From contig JAWQFM010000008.1 of assembly GCA_033442325.1 (NCBI GenBank), positions 927,194 through 991,193 on the forward strand: DNA of 64,000 bases, read 5' to 3'. Position numbers and translations under genes: made by a program. This document shows positions 43,536 to 49,331 of this stretch, in pieces (the first letter of the stretch is position 1; the number at the start of each line of letters is the position of its first letter). Below the pieces are notes generated by a model. The model saw only the letters and a program-made list of their open reading frames with translations. It had not been told where the DNA came from and did not search any database. Origin of the DNA: Salpingoeca rosetta (taxonomy: Eukaryota; Protista; Choanoflagellata).

Positions 43536-43951
43536 TTGTTGGGGAAGAGAAAAACCGCCACAGCAGCGCGGCGTCCTGTCTTTCCTCGCAACAGCACAAA
43601 ATGCATTTTCAAAACGTGGTTGCTTCCTTTCCTTTCTTTTTTTGTGTGTGGCTGACTCACAACTCACGCCACCGACCAATCAACGCTATCTTCTCCATCA
43701 CCGTCCCTCAACACAATAACAACCAAAGTTGCTGTTGGTGTTGATTCTTTGGTGTTCAGATCAGCATCGACCACCACCTGTGCTGCTGGTTTGTTGCACG
43801 CACATGCACACAGAGCGTCAGCCCAACCACCGTGTCACTGTGTCACACCACACCACACGATCAGCACCAGAACCGAAACCACAACAACACCCACACCAAC
43901 AACAATATCAACAAACAACAACCACAACCGGACATCCGATCACAGCTCATC

Positions 43952-46511
43952 ATGAAGGGGCGAGGGAGTGGCCAAGGCAGTGGCCACCCCGTGGTCGTCG
44001 CCGTTTTGTTGGCCCTCGCGTGCCTTCTCGTGTCCGCACGTCCCACACTGGCTCGCAAGGACCGAGACTTCAAGCCACACTCCCAAACCAGCCTTCCGTA
44101 CGTCGTTGCCTCTTGTGTGTGTGTGTGTGTCATGTGTGTGTGTGCGTCATGTGTGTGCGTGTGTGTGTCATGTGTGTGTGCGCGCGTGTGTGTGCCATGT
44201 GTGTGTGTCATGTGTGTGTGTGTGTTCGGGTACCGTGTACATTGCGCACTTCAGGTTTCGATGACATCTCACACAAACACACAAACACACACGCCCTCGC
44301 ACTCACTCTTCTCAACCCGCACGCAACCACAAACCCACGCATGTGCACGCAACGCACACAGGCTCAATGCTGGGCCGGGGGTGACGATGGACGAGCTGAA
44401 CAACGTGCGCCAGAGGCTGGACGTGCTGCCCGACCACCTGTTCGCCATGACCCACAACAACCTCATGCTGCGGTTTCAGCTGGGCGGCGTCGTGTGCGGC
44501 CGAATTCCAGACACCGCGTTTTGCCTGCAGAGCCTGCCCACCACGCGTTGGATTGGCAGCATCGTCACACACTACCCACTTGGCGTGGGTAACCTCACTG
44601 TCACGGACGTCTCCGCCTCTGGGTTCCGCCTCACGTCCACGTACACCCTGGACGTGTCGCGACCAAACGAGACCATCAGCACGGGCGCCATATCCATGTT
44701 CAGCCAGTTTCTCCCGCCAACACAGAAGGACATTATGACGCGCGGCGAAATCGAGTTCACCTGCGCGCGAAACATCACGGTGCCGACATTCCCCCACCTG
44801 AGCCTGGGCATCGACCGTATCATGGAGGATGGCATGGTCGTGCACCGCTACCGCCTCGTGGCCGCCCACCACTGCGTCTGCTCAACACCAGACCCATCCT
44901 CCCCCTCATCATCGTCAGCAAACGGCGACGGTGCCTCCACCTCATCCTCCTCTGCAACCACACCTCTGCCGCTGGCGTCGTCCACAACCGCCGGTTCACC
45001 ATCCTCCTCCTCGTCAACATCAGAGCATTTGCTTGCACACCCGTCTTGCGAGTACTTCAACACCACGTACAGCTACGCCTCTGCGATGGACGAGTGGGAG
45101 CGCAAGTCGCCAGACCACAGCTACCAGGCGCACAAGTGCTTCACCCGCGTCTCGGGCCGCCTCTCAATCTGGGCCGGCATCGGCACGCTCCTGATTGCGC
45201 TCATCTGGGGGATGGACGTCTGGCTCGGCGTGCCCCTCATCGCGTGCGAGTCGTGCACGGGCGCAGACAGACATGTGGACGAAACGTCCACCTGCCGCGG
45301 CCGCTGTCTGACGTCATCGGCACCGCGGCACCGCCTCCACCCCATCGGCACTGCACGCTACATCTGGACCTTTGGCTTCCTGGACGTGCTCACACCGCCC
45401 GTAAACATGCTTGAGCGGCGTGACTCCGCGTGGGCAACCGCTGCCGGGTTTGGCATGATGAGCCTGACCATCCCCTTCGTCTTCAACGGCGCGCTGGAGC
45501 TGACACAGATCCTTGAGCTGCTGCTCTTCTTCACGCCCATCCTCCTGTGCCGGCATGCGCGCGTGCCGTCCATCGGCTTGTGCCTGGGCTGCTTCTTCTC
45601 CATCATCGCCCTGGGCGAGATTGGCACGCTCATGGGCTGTCTTGGCCGCACGTCCTCCTTTGTGAACCTCATGGCGACCCTCCCCTCCCTGCTCTGCGCC
45701 ATGCTTGTTGTCAGCTGGTACGTGCTTGAAACCAAGCGCCGCTTCGTGGCCCTGTGGCTCTGGTTCAACGACCGTGGGCCCAGGCCCGTCTCCTGGCGCG
45801 AGCGCGCCCTGCTTGCCCTTGACCGCAGCGGGTATGTTGCCAGCCTGCTTGCCGACAAGATCAAGGTCAGCCTTGGCGAGTCGCTCACCTGGAGCGCGTT
45901 CCGCGCCACCATCCTCGGCCAGGACAACTACAGCGTGCCCACGCGGCTGCTGACGGCTGTGATCCTGGCCATCAGCTGCCTGGTGAGCCTGCTGCCGCTC
46001 ACCATGTCCTATGCGAGCCTGGCCGGCGCTGCGGTGGAGTGGATCATGTCCATGGGACACTGCTGCTCAGGTGTGCAGTGCGACCCGACACCGGGGTCCA
46101 GCCTGTGGATCAGAGACGCGTTTGACCTCGGTTACGGCATCCAAGTTGGGCGCGGGCACTCGTGCTCGCGCGACCAGATTGTTGTGCGCCGTGCCGTGAG
46201 CTACGGCATGACTGTCAGCACCTCTGTCACCGCTGTGGCTGTCACCTTCTCGCTGCTGCATGTGCTTGTTGTCTACCGCAAGCGCATGTTTCTTCTCTTC
46301 CGTGGACGCCCCGATTTCATCACAAAGCATGTCCCCATGGACAAGAGTATCGGCAGCACCCTCAAGTTTGGCGGCACGCAGGTGTGTATCTGTGCGCGTC
46401 TGTGTGTTTGTTTGTGTGTGTGTGTGTGTGCGTCTGTGTGTGTCCGTGTCTGTCTGTCTGTCTGTTCGTGCATGTGTCTGTGTGTGTGTGTGTGTGTGTG
46501 TGCGTGCGTGT

Positions 46512-46550
<39 letters not shown>

Positions 46551-46667
46551 TGAGAGTTAGTAACTGCATACGTACTTGTGCTTTCCTTTGTTCTTCTTCC
46601 TCCATCTCCATCCTTTCTCACCCCTCACCCAACATACTCACACACACACACACACACACTCACTCAC

Positions 46668-46743
<76 letters not shown>

Positions 46744-48624
46744 TCACACTCACACCACATGTGGCAGGTTGCGAGTGCCATTGGCGGATGGGTGCTGGGC
46801 ACATGTGTGCTGACGCTGCTGATTGGCTTCATTGCCATCTCCACCGTGCTGCCGTTCATGAACATCTACGGCGACTGGTTCTGGCCCTGGTGGTTCCAGT
46901 TTGTCATCTACAACCACGAGACCGGCGCCCTCGGGTTCCCCGTCATCCTGCTCATCAACTACTGGCTGCTGCTGTTCTGCGTGCGGTTTGTGTTTGAGAT
47001 CTCCAAGAAGGACCACGGCCTGCAGCGGCGCGGGTTCTTCCACCTGATGGACCTGATCCAGTTTATCTTCTACATCCTCAACGCGCTGCTTGGCCTCATC
47101 AAGCGTGCCGTCACCTCCATGGTGCTGCAGGCCGTGTTTGTCAGCCGCATGGACAAGAGCCTCATGCCCCGCAAGTACGAGCTCACGGACAAGTCGTACG
47201 TCGCCTACTTGGGGTTCATGCAGCTGGACTACTACTACTCCCACCCAGTGCTGCTCACCGCCGTCTACTTCTTCCTCGCGGGCACCCCGCGCGACCGTCG
47301 CACAGCACGTCGGCTCGGCATCCGCCTGTGGCGCTCCCGTAACCGCGGCGACCGCGTATCGCTCTCGCGTGTCACGTCCAGCCCGCGCAGCCCTGACAGC
47401 GGCGGCGGCGGTATTGAGCTCACCAGCAGCATGGAGTCGCCTGGCTTGCAGCTCGGCGGAAGCGCCTCGTATCAAGACAGCATCAACGGCAACGGCGCGT
47501 GTGTGCCCGAGTACACGTGGCGGGTGCGCAACCGGTTCTGGCTGGCCATCACGCTGCACAACAACCCGCAGCTGAAGGAACAGCGCAGCCACTACCTGCG
47601 GGCCAAGGCCGAGGAGCAACGGCTGAAGGAGCTGAGGGAGGCCGCCAAGGTCATGCGCAGCCGCCGCATGTCGCTGCACGAGATGGCACATCGCGTCACG
47701 CGCGCGTCCGCACACGTCGCACACACGCTCGCGGGCCTGCGCTACCACGCCATGGACAACCAGCCCGCAAGCACGGCGGAGAGCGGGCGTGACTCGCCAA
47801 AGGCCCTGCTTGCCGACAGCGCTGATGGCACCAACGGCACGAATGGCACAAAGGCGGTGGCGAGCGGCAACGGCTACCATGGCGGTGGTATTGGGTTTGG
47901 GCGGAGTGGGAAGAACAAGTACCTGCGCCACTATCGCCAGGACAGCACAGATGATCACGATGACGATGATGATGACGATGAAGGCGAAAACGCCTACGAT
48001 TACGGCGATGGTGGTGGTGGTGGTGGTGGTGATGGCGCGAAGAGCAGCAGCGACGATGTGCATGTGCAGCACCGCCAATATGATGTGGCAGACAGCGATG
48101 GCGAGGCGCTCGACTACACGTGCCCGCCCAACACGCTGCTTGACCTGAGCCAGGTGCACCTGCAGGAGGTGCAGCGCAAGCAGCAGCGGGCCATGGAGGA
48201 CGAGGACGGCCTGTACGAGGAGCTCGCAGCCTTCAGCGCCAACCTGGCCGTCGACTCTCGCAGTGGCAGTCGTGGTGGTGCTGATAGTGGTGATAGTGAT
48301 GACGACGCAGGTGGTGATGTGGCGCGTGCACGGCGGGGTGTTGGGTCGTTTTCGCCAACAGCGGGAGTAACTACAGCGACGTCGGCGCCGTTATCAGCAG
48401 CAACGAGCTGGAACCCAACACGACGGGCTGGCGGTGTTGGTGATATAGACGGTGGTGGTGGTGGTGGTGGTGGTGATGAGAGGGGGCGTGCGCAGTCGGC
48501 GCGGTTGCGTTCACGGGTGGTGCGGGATGATGGTCGGAATGGCGGTGGGAACGGTGCTGGTGAGAGGCAGCGCTCCATCACGTTTGCAGACCGCCTCAGC
48601 CAGTCCACAAGCTCCCAGCTTTGA
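43952..48624 (+). CDS. STRA6-family (RBP-receptor/STRA6-like) polytopic membrane protein with signal peptide and extra N-terminal extracellular domain, 3 exons
   Basis: Exons are 43952-44097, 44362-46381 and 46768-48624. Several TM segments are followed by [76 protein letters not shown] and [22 protein letters not shown]. These correspond to the STRA6 hallmarks (MDLSLLP...DPGY.TY..FL......HP and R.RW.LAYTL..NP.L...R). PVNML near the first TMs is also STRA6-like. Confidence 0.85.
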
Positions 48625-49331
48625 AAGAAAGGTGCGTCTGTGTGTGTGTGTGTGTGTGGGTGTGGGTGTGGGTGTGGGTGCGTGGGGGGTGTGGGAGTGG
48701 GTGTCTGTCTGTCTGTCTGTCTACCTGTCTATGTCTGTGTTGTGTGCACGTGGACAGCCGGTTGCCTACATCCCTCGCTCGCGCCACCTTTTCCGTGCTG
48801 TTTCTTCCCCGCGTCACCTCACCAAGTGCACTGTTGCACGCCATTGCTGTTGCTTGTAGAGCCCCCCACCCCACGCACGACACCTCACGATACCGGTTTT
48901 GTTTGCCGTGTGTAGCAGAGACGGAATCAGTTGTGGATGCTTGCGTTGATTTGATGTATCTAATCGAAGTTGATGGTTGACCTTTGTTTGTGTGTAACAA
49001 CTTCTTGTTTGAATAATTTCTGTTCCCCCCCCCCCAACCTGCCCTTTCTTCGCCCGCTTGCGTTTGCGTGGCTGTGTTTCGTGCGCGTGTGTGTATGGTT
49101 GTTGAGTAAGCGCACAGACGCTGCTCTCTAATAAAGCAAGCAGCTACAGCAGCAACTACAGCAGCAGCTACATGCACGACAGAACAAGAAAGGTCTATCC
49201 TAGTGGAAACAAGAGGAGGAAGGGAAGAGGAGAGGAAGCCTGCAGCACAGAAGACTGCAGTCAAGGGCAAGAGTGTCAACACATTCGCACACACACACAC
49301 ACAAACACATTAACGCGTGCGTGAGCGGCCG

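Follow-up and report, generated by a model that had tools for sequence, protein, structure and literature searches.

A Salpingoeca rosetta gene encodes a STRA6-family transporter that carries an additional domain ahead of its membrane-spanning core. STRA6 is the vertebrate receptor for retinol-binding protein. The gene lies on the plus strand at positions 43952–48624 of the window, the 64,000-nucleotide stretch of DNA that was analyzed. Its mRNA encodes, in this order, a signal peptide, a disulfide-containing domain of ~175 amino acids, a variable Ser/Thr stalk, a multi-pass STRA6 core, and a cytoplasmic tail. The best explanation of the segment studied here is an ectodomain belonging to a form of the STRA6 family that is specific to choanoflagellates. 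Structure prediction makes it probable that this ectodomain adopts a divergent MRH (P-type lectin; the name stands for homology to the mannose-6-phosphate receptor) fold, in which an N-terminal helix and a flattened β-barrel are accompanied by an extra loop or helix of ~25 residues at domain positions 98–122. The MRH-like/STRA6 fusion is a new domain architecture made of two known families. For the whole chain of reasoning, from the identity of the ectodomain through to a function in capture, our confidence falls just short of even. The features of the gene are as follows.

43952–44097, plus strand: exon 1, with the start codon, the putative signal peptide (~residues 1–34), and a short linker ending PHSQTSLP
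44098–44361, plus strand: intron 1 (264 nt), GT at 44098 and AG at 44360–44361, RNA depth zero
44362–44890, plus strand: predicted MRH-like ectodomain, protein residues 50–225 (domain residues 1–176, counted from 44363)
44528–44530, 44741–44743, 44825–44827, and 44849–44851, plus strand: candidate sugar-site residues Gln56, Arg127, Glu155, and Tyr163, respectively, as placed on the predicted model
44891–45031, plus strand: Ser/Thr/Pro-rich stalk, residues 226–272 (47 residues), delimited from composition
45032–46381, plus strand: rest of exon 2, with a Cys-containing pre-membrane segment (residues 273–312) followed by the STRA6 core's N-terminal half; TM1 from ~residue 315
46382–46767, plus strand: intron 2 (GT..AG, 386 nt), microsatellite-rich, RNA depth zero
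46768–48624, plus strand: exon 3, which encodes the remaining, C-terminal half of the STRA6 core and the long cytoplasmic tail of low complexity and ends with the stop codon (48622–48624)

Gene structure and expression

The three exons (43952–44097, 44362–46381, and 46768–48624) are spliced at canonical GT..AG sites into a single open frame of 1340 codons, giving a whole protein of 1340 amino acids. Position 43952 is the first in-frame ATG. The encoded N-terminus looks like a standard cleavable signal peptide, with its basic n-region, hydrophobic residues 11–29 (hydropathy peak 2.3), and T-L-A preceding Arg35. Position 44362 is the last base of a split codon. In transcript contigs from two independent studies (X4 record 1 and X6 record 7), 44097 is joined directly to 44362, and the latter contig, which starts upstream of 43800, crosses all three exons as far as 48441. 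Two further runs of stranded RNA-seq (X21 and X22) gave raw reads with a depth of 0 in both introns and with exon coverage on one strand only. The RNA joints and the zero intron depth indicate that a single transcript carries the ectodomain together with the signal-peptide exon and the transporter. Transcripts starting inside exon 2 did not form a sizeable class in the RNA data, in which short reads leave room for a minor internal start.

The 44097/44362 splice had been proposed in a first-pass annotation of this DNA and is borne out by the transcript contigs and the stranded reads. That annotation had also placed a signal peptide and an extracellular domain of ~170 amino acids ahead of the STRA6 module. 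Both were recovered, with a domain length of ~175 amino acids, and every sequence motif that it quoted is present in the plus-strand frame from 44363, followed by a Ser/Thr-rich run. At intron 2, the contigs join 46377|46764, which amounts to 46381|46768, as GCAG is repeated on either side. The position of this intron is the same in three related sequences (P0001, P0003, and P0007, described below), where "FGGTQ" is followed by read-through of the intron.

Several further observations concern the noncoding and low-complexity parts of the gene. The length of intron 1 is a multiple of three without an in-frame stop, so that ORF 43832–46813 spans it unbroken. Its 5′ half is rich in (TG)n and its 3′ half in (CA)n, and a retained copy would add 88 Cys/Val-rich residues; no retention was seen in the RNA. 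In the region of the cytoplasmic tail, a coding triplet repeat of the GAT/GGT type at 47950–47981 encodes a poly-Asp/Gly tract. RNA reads with joints that go back at this repeat carry more repeat units than the window sequence, which suggests a length polymorphism or a repeat collapsed in the assembly. The transcript contigs also break at a G-rich tract (48441–48489). Within 4–8 nt after the stop codon, there is a splice-donor-like AAAG|GTGCGT with a (TG)n run (48622–48640), and the matches of two transcript contigs (X4 record 6 and X6 record 12) end at 48628, with their continuation elsewhere. There seems to be a 3′ UTR intron right behind the stop codon. The C-terminus (48610–48621) is S-Q-L, and that of the Microstomoeca orthologue (P0002) is S-Q-I; this conserved S-x-hydrophobic ending looks like a class I PDZ-binding motif.

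STRA6 core and relatives of the ectodomain

Both large exons matched the Pfam family RBP_receptor (PF14752; cut-off 25), with 29.9 bits (E 3.2e-07) for exon 2 and 64.6 bits (E 9.9e-18) for exon 3, the latter covering profile positions 431–605. The closest full-length relative, P0002, matched PF14752 at 100.8 bits and also matched the solved zebrafish STRA6 structure 5SY1 (residues 360–575, E 2e-4). The alignment of its C-terminal helix with residues 601–633 of 5SY1 was weak and, alone, not significant. Judged by hydropathy only, residues 312–847 contain approximately nine to ten hydrophobic segments. A multi-pass topology with the N-terminus outside would fit the predicted signal peptide and the glycosylation sequons that precede TM1. 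The protein resembles vertebrate STRA6 in its homologous multi-pass core and, by this predicted topology, in having the N-terminus outside and the C-terminal region in the cytoplasm. Vertebrate STRA6, however, has ~670 amino acids and lacks a signal peptide, ectodomain, or stalk, whereas the choanoflagellate protein has ~270 residues ahead of its pre-membrane segment, and its core is followed by a long tail of low complexity. STRA6-family clusters in the ESM Atlas are 700–830 amino acids long with PF14752 as the sole annotated domain; therefore, the ~270 residues ahead of the core are regarded as an addition.

A profile search for the ectodomain among 1.84 billion cluster representatives returned genuine relatives in three clusters only (P0001, P0002, and P0003), all of which are STRA6 proteins with the domain at the N-terminus. 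One further relative (P0007) was obtained by a word search. The sources of these sequences are as follows.

P0001: TARA Oceans scaffolds
P0002: complete transcript ORF of Microstomoeca roanoka (EukProt), with its own signal peptide
P0003: JGI metagenome
P0007: Logan assembly

The ectodomain occupies the same N-terminal place in all four relatives and was found only in choanoflagellate-type STRA6 proteins. Counted from these sequences, it is present in at least five lineages, in the STRA6 context only. Fusions of this type in further choanoflagellates, for which the first-pass annotation had suggested looking, therefore do exist, Microstomoeca roanoka being one example. Signal-peptide exons or segments equivalent to exon 1 were found in P0002 and, as an exon upstream, in two genomic homologues (L002 and L003). 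In a TARA homologue (L001), the end of exon 1 (PHSQ.SLP) and the acceptor context of intron 1 (ACAG|GCT) are conserved.

Three other candidates from the profile search, P0004–P0006 (E 5e-8 to 6.5e-4), were rejected as relatives, as their scores summed over many near-identical stretches. P0004 consists of tandem FN3 repeats, and its best single pairwise alignment had 28 bits and ran into the next repeat unit. P0005 is a tandem peptide-repeat protein, and P0006 is made of cadherin-like β-sandwich repeats. A scan of JGI metagenome contigs with two conserved motifs gave 149 pattern matches with no relative among them. Residues 1–34 of P0003 were left out of the alignment; they are 85–88% identical to unrelated proteins (P0008 and P0009), and the contig or gene call appears to be chimeric at its start.

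Identity of the window protein to P0001, P0002, P0003, and P0007 is 61, 51, 34, and 36% in the domain and 80, 78, 43, and 42% in the membrane core, respectively. It is 31–36% in the stalk where this can be aligned (P0001 and P0002), and residues 723–900 are 95% identical to the M. roanoka transcript. Such closeness to M. roanoka is in keeping with a craspedid choanoflagellate. The dN/dS values against the TARA orthologue are 0.31 for the domain and 0.22 for the core. The alignment of five sequences has 29 invariant columns, which include the five cysteines of the domain (positions 45, 54, 134, 171, and 173), Gln56, Trp63, His70, Arg127, Glu129, Tyr163, and His169. Judged by this pattern of conservation, the ectodomain is a folded domain under purifying selection and not a linker. 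It also contains three N-x-S/T sequons. The stalk, which is probably O-glycosylated and extended given its composition, varies in length among the orthologues and is nearly absent in P0003 and P0007. A Cys-containing segment of 40 residues lies between it and the first membrane helix (~residue 315).

Predicted fold of the ectodomain

AlphaFold was run with the five-sequence alignment and gave a model (m3ba50453590e) with a pLDDT of 58.4 and a pTM of 0.60. All statements on the fold refer to this one prediction from a shallow alignment of five sequences. The model contains a helix (residues 9–20) and approximately eleven strands, with an insertion at 98–122 that is poorly defined; the pLDDT is below 50 at residues 31–76 and 103–116. 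With only two aligned sequences, the prediction reached a pLDDT of 41 and was not usable; Foldseek returned noise for it, in which the MRH rows were scattered and nonsignificant.

In a Foldseek search of the PDB with the five-sequence model, MRH-domain structures made up approximately 45 of the best 50 rows. The best match was to domains 1–3 of CI-MPR (E 4.6e-4, probability 0.98), and CD-MPR reached a TM-score of up to 0.47 by target. When the structure matches were looked at a second time, MRH domains took the best 47 rows; IGF2R domain 11 and Elapor1 were among the matches. An exhaustive VIA-align search of 48,161 representative chains placed MRH domains in all of the best 20 positions, with a clear gap before the next fold, and these matches extend over entire MRH domains, in CD-MPR also over the N-terminal helix. 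The better modeled C-terminal sheet alone still matched CI-MPR with an rmsd of 2.9 Å. Within the structural alignments to MRH domains, the identity was 9–14%. The flattened β-barrel of approximately nine strands by which MRH domains are recognized (PMC9388126) is present in the predicted model.

At the sequence level, no such relationship was detected. The Pfam MRH families (CIMR, Man-6-P_recep, PRKCSH, and ATG27) gave no match at E up to 10 when four members and the whole of P0002 were scanned. PDB sequence-profile searches with the ectodomain returned no MRH chain at E up to 10, only chance matches (E ≥ 0.3). ESM Atlas feature searches with the ectodomain gave nothing usable, with one weak ATG27 row among the Atlas searches, and the rows from the Atlas shape search were mixed and low in TM-score. 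The claim of an MRH ectodomain in the first-pass annotation is therefore upheld in part: Foldseek and VIA-align matches are dominated by MRH domains, but no MRH family is recognized from the sequence, and there are five cysteines instead of the canonical six.

Compared with the MRH domains and P-type lectins (CD-MPR, the CI-MPR repeats, OS-9/Yos9, glucosidase II β, and GNPTG), to which its sequence similarity is undetectable, the ectodomain differs in three further respects. It has five cysteines with an extra hairpin pair (C45–C54), whereas known MRH domains have six to eight; it carries the insertion of ~25 residues; and it is fused to a multi-pass transporter. The MRH proteins known to us are soluble or single-pass. 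No paper combining STRA6 with MRH domains was found in the literature searched, and the only co-mention of STRA6 and choanoflagellates was in work on sponge gametogenesis. These blank searches for STRA6 with MRH fit the earlier impression that the architecture had not been described.

Candidate sugar site and proposed capture function

MRH domains are described as flattened barrels of nine strands that hold three disulfides and have their mannose site at one end (PMC9388126), and in a recent survey a QREY tetrad with at least six cysteines served as the criterion for likely M6P binding (bioRxiv 10.64898/2026.10.22.760878). The ectodomain has five invariant cysteines, as against at least six conserved cysteines in three disulfides. 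In the model, C134 closes the third-last strand, and C171 and C173 come after the last one. C134 with C173 (or C171) would be, by position, the sole pair that matches a canonical disulfide, the C-terminal one. C45 and C54 are opposed across a predicted hairpin, and the leftover cysteine may bond to the pre-membrane segment. A cysteine cluster in a loop of the STRA6 core (GHCC.G.QCDPTPG, ~46060–46110, residues ~616–630) is kept in all five choanoflagellate-type sequences and could supply bonding partners for the odd cysteine of the ectodomain.

All five sequences share Gln56, Arg127, and Tyr163, at identities as low as 33–35%. Glu155 is kept in three, the window protein and its two nearest relatives (P0001 and P0002), and is lost in P0003 and P0007. 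Arg127, Glu155, and Tyr163 each lie on one of the last three strands of the model, an order that is the same as that of the canonical Arg, Glu, and Tyr. Gln56 is placed after Cys54 in an invariant FCLQS motif. Three structural alignments end at model residue 174, which is paired with CD-MPR residue 154, glucosidase II β residue 450, and OS-9 residue 229. The canonical tyrosines of CD-MPR and OS-9, which we take to be Tyr143 and Tyr218, are each 11 residues before these ends. That of glucosidase II β is Tyr-439 (PMC9266668), also 11 residues before the end at 450. The tyrosine is thus at the same distance from the end in all three proteins, and this position corresponds to Tyr163 here. The four residues were placed by strand order and alignment end-points, and the assignment is partly post hoc, so the model allows a Q-R-E-Y tetrad in the window protein as a possibility. 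A check for these four residues had been suggested in the first-pass annotation; three of them are invariant, but the glutamate is missing in two of the five sequences, and the placement is that by strand order and end-points.

Here, we outline how such an ectodomain could serve the transporter. STRA6 is dimeric, its N-terminus is extracellular, and its outer lipophilic cleft has a lateral opening to the membrane. In a dimer of the choanoflagellate protein, two MRH-like domains would be held on flexible stalks above the outer cleft. They may form a capture module for a glycosylated partner, which could be a glycoconjugate or a carrier protein bearing a mannose-type glycan. With the captured partner held near, lipophilic cargo would enter the cleft. 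Such capture in cis would be the counterpart of the docking of soluble RBP4 to STRA6 in vertebrates; to our knowledge, RBP4 is not expected in choanoflagellates. The first-pass annotation had likewise suggested that a domain capturing glycans or glycolipids could stand in for the RBP carrier, which is a conjecture. As the stalk is near-absent in the clade of P0003 and P0007, its reach would not be essential. We put this capture mechanism forward tentatively, with functional Gln/Arg/Glu/Tyr candidates and a mannose-type glycan or glycoconjugate as the partner, and hold it to be somewhat less than evenly probable. A functioning lectin domain that brings a glycosylated lipid carrier or a glycoconjugate to dock on the STRA6 cleft is, on the present evidence, an unlikely reading.

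The fold evidence would equally suit an ectodomain that retained the MRH fold and lost the lectin role, acting as a protein-binding, dimer-stabilizing, or capping domain over the STRA6 cleft. IGF2R domain 11, which binds IGF2, provides a model for such a role, and we know of no established sugar binding for ATG27 and Elapor1, which are membrane proteins with MRH-like domains. IGF2R domain 11 and Elapor1 both appeared among the structure matches. The retention of one canonical disulfide position (C134–C173) among only five cysteines, the loss of Glu155 in P0003 and P0007, and the blank Pfam scans for the lectin MRH families point the same way. However, Gln56, Arg127, and Tyr163 have stayed invariant despite low identity, at the sites expected from strand order and end-points, and the window protein and its two closest relatives carry all four candidates. 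We consider the loss of the lectin role a serious but minority possibility. The likeness to MRH domains might instead be an artifact of a poorly constrained AlphaFold model, in which case the ectodomain would be a lineage-specific, β-rich domain of another or new fold. A random β-rich model is not expected to single out one family, whereas the best 20 of 48,161 chains all belong to one superfamily, with whole MRH domains covered and a clear gap to the next fold, and the C-terminal sheet alone finds CI-MPR. We regard this explanation as improbable.

A role inside the cell has also to be weighed, in which the domain would be a sorting or quality-control lectin that steers the transporter or glycosylated partners to the endo-lysosomal or food-vacuole membrane. 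Vertebrate STRA6 is a plasma-membrane protein, which speaks against such a role. The topology leaves the domain either luminal or extracellular, and most known MRH proteins work in the ER, Golgi, or endosomes (PMC9388126; bioRxiv 10.64898/2026.10.22.760878). We find the intracellular role very improbable.

With its predicted MRH-like ectodomain, the protein adds a multi-pass transporter to the few settings known for MRH domains. For the role of STRA6 outside vertebrates, where RBP4 is absent, a conserved and expressed lectin-fold ectodomain fused in cis in choanoflagellates suggests, in testable form, how the ancestral protein may have come by its ligand. Salpingoeca rosetta is genetically tractable, and the ectodomain is small and secreted; therefore, binding assays and knock-outs are practical. 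If the domain does work as a lectin that docks such a partner, the STRA6 family would have started out as a lipid importer coupled to a lectin in unicellular relatives of animals, and the RBP4–STRA6 system of vertebrates would be a later swap of the built-in capture domain for a soluble carrier.
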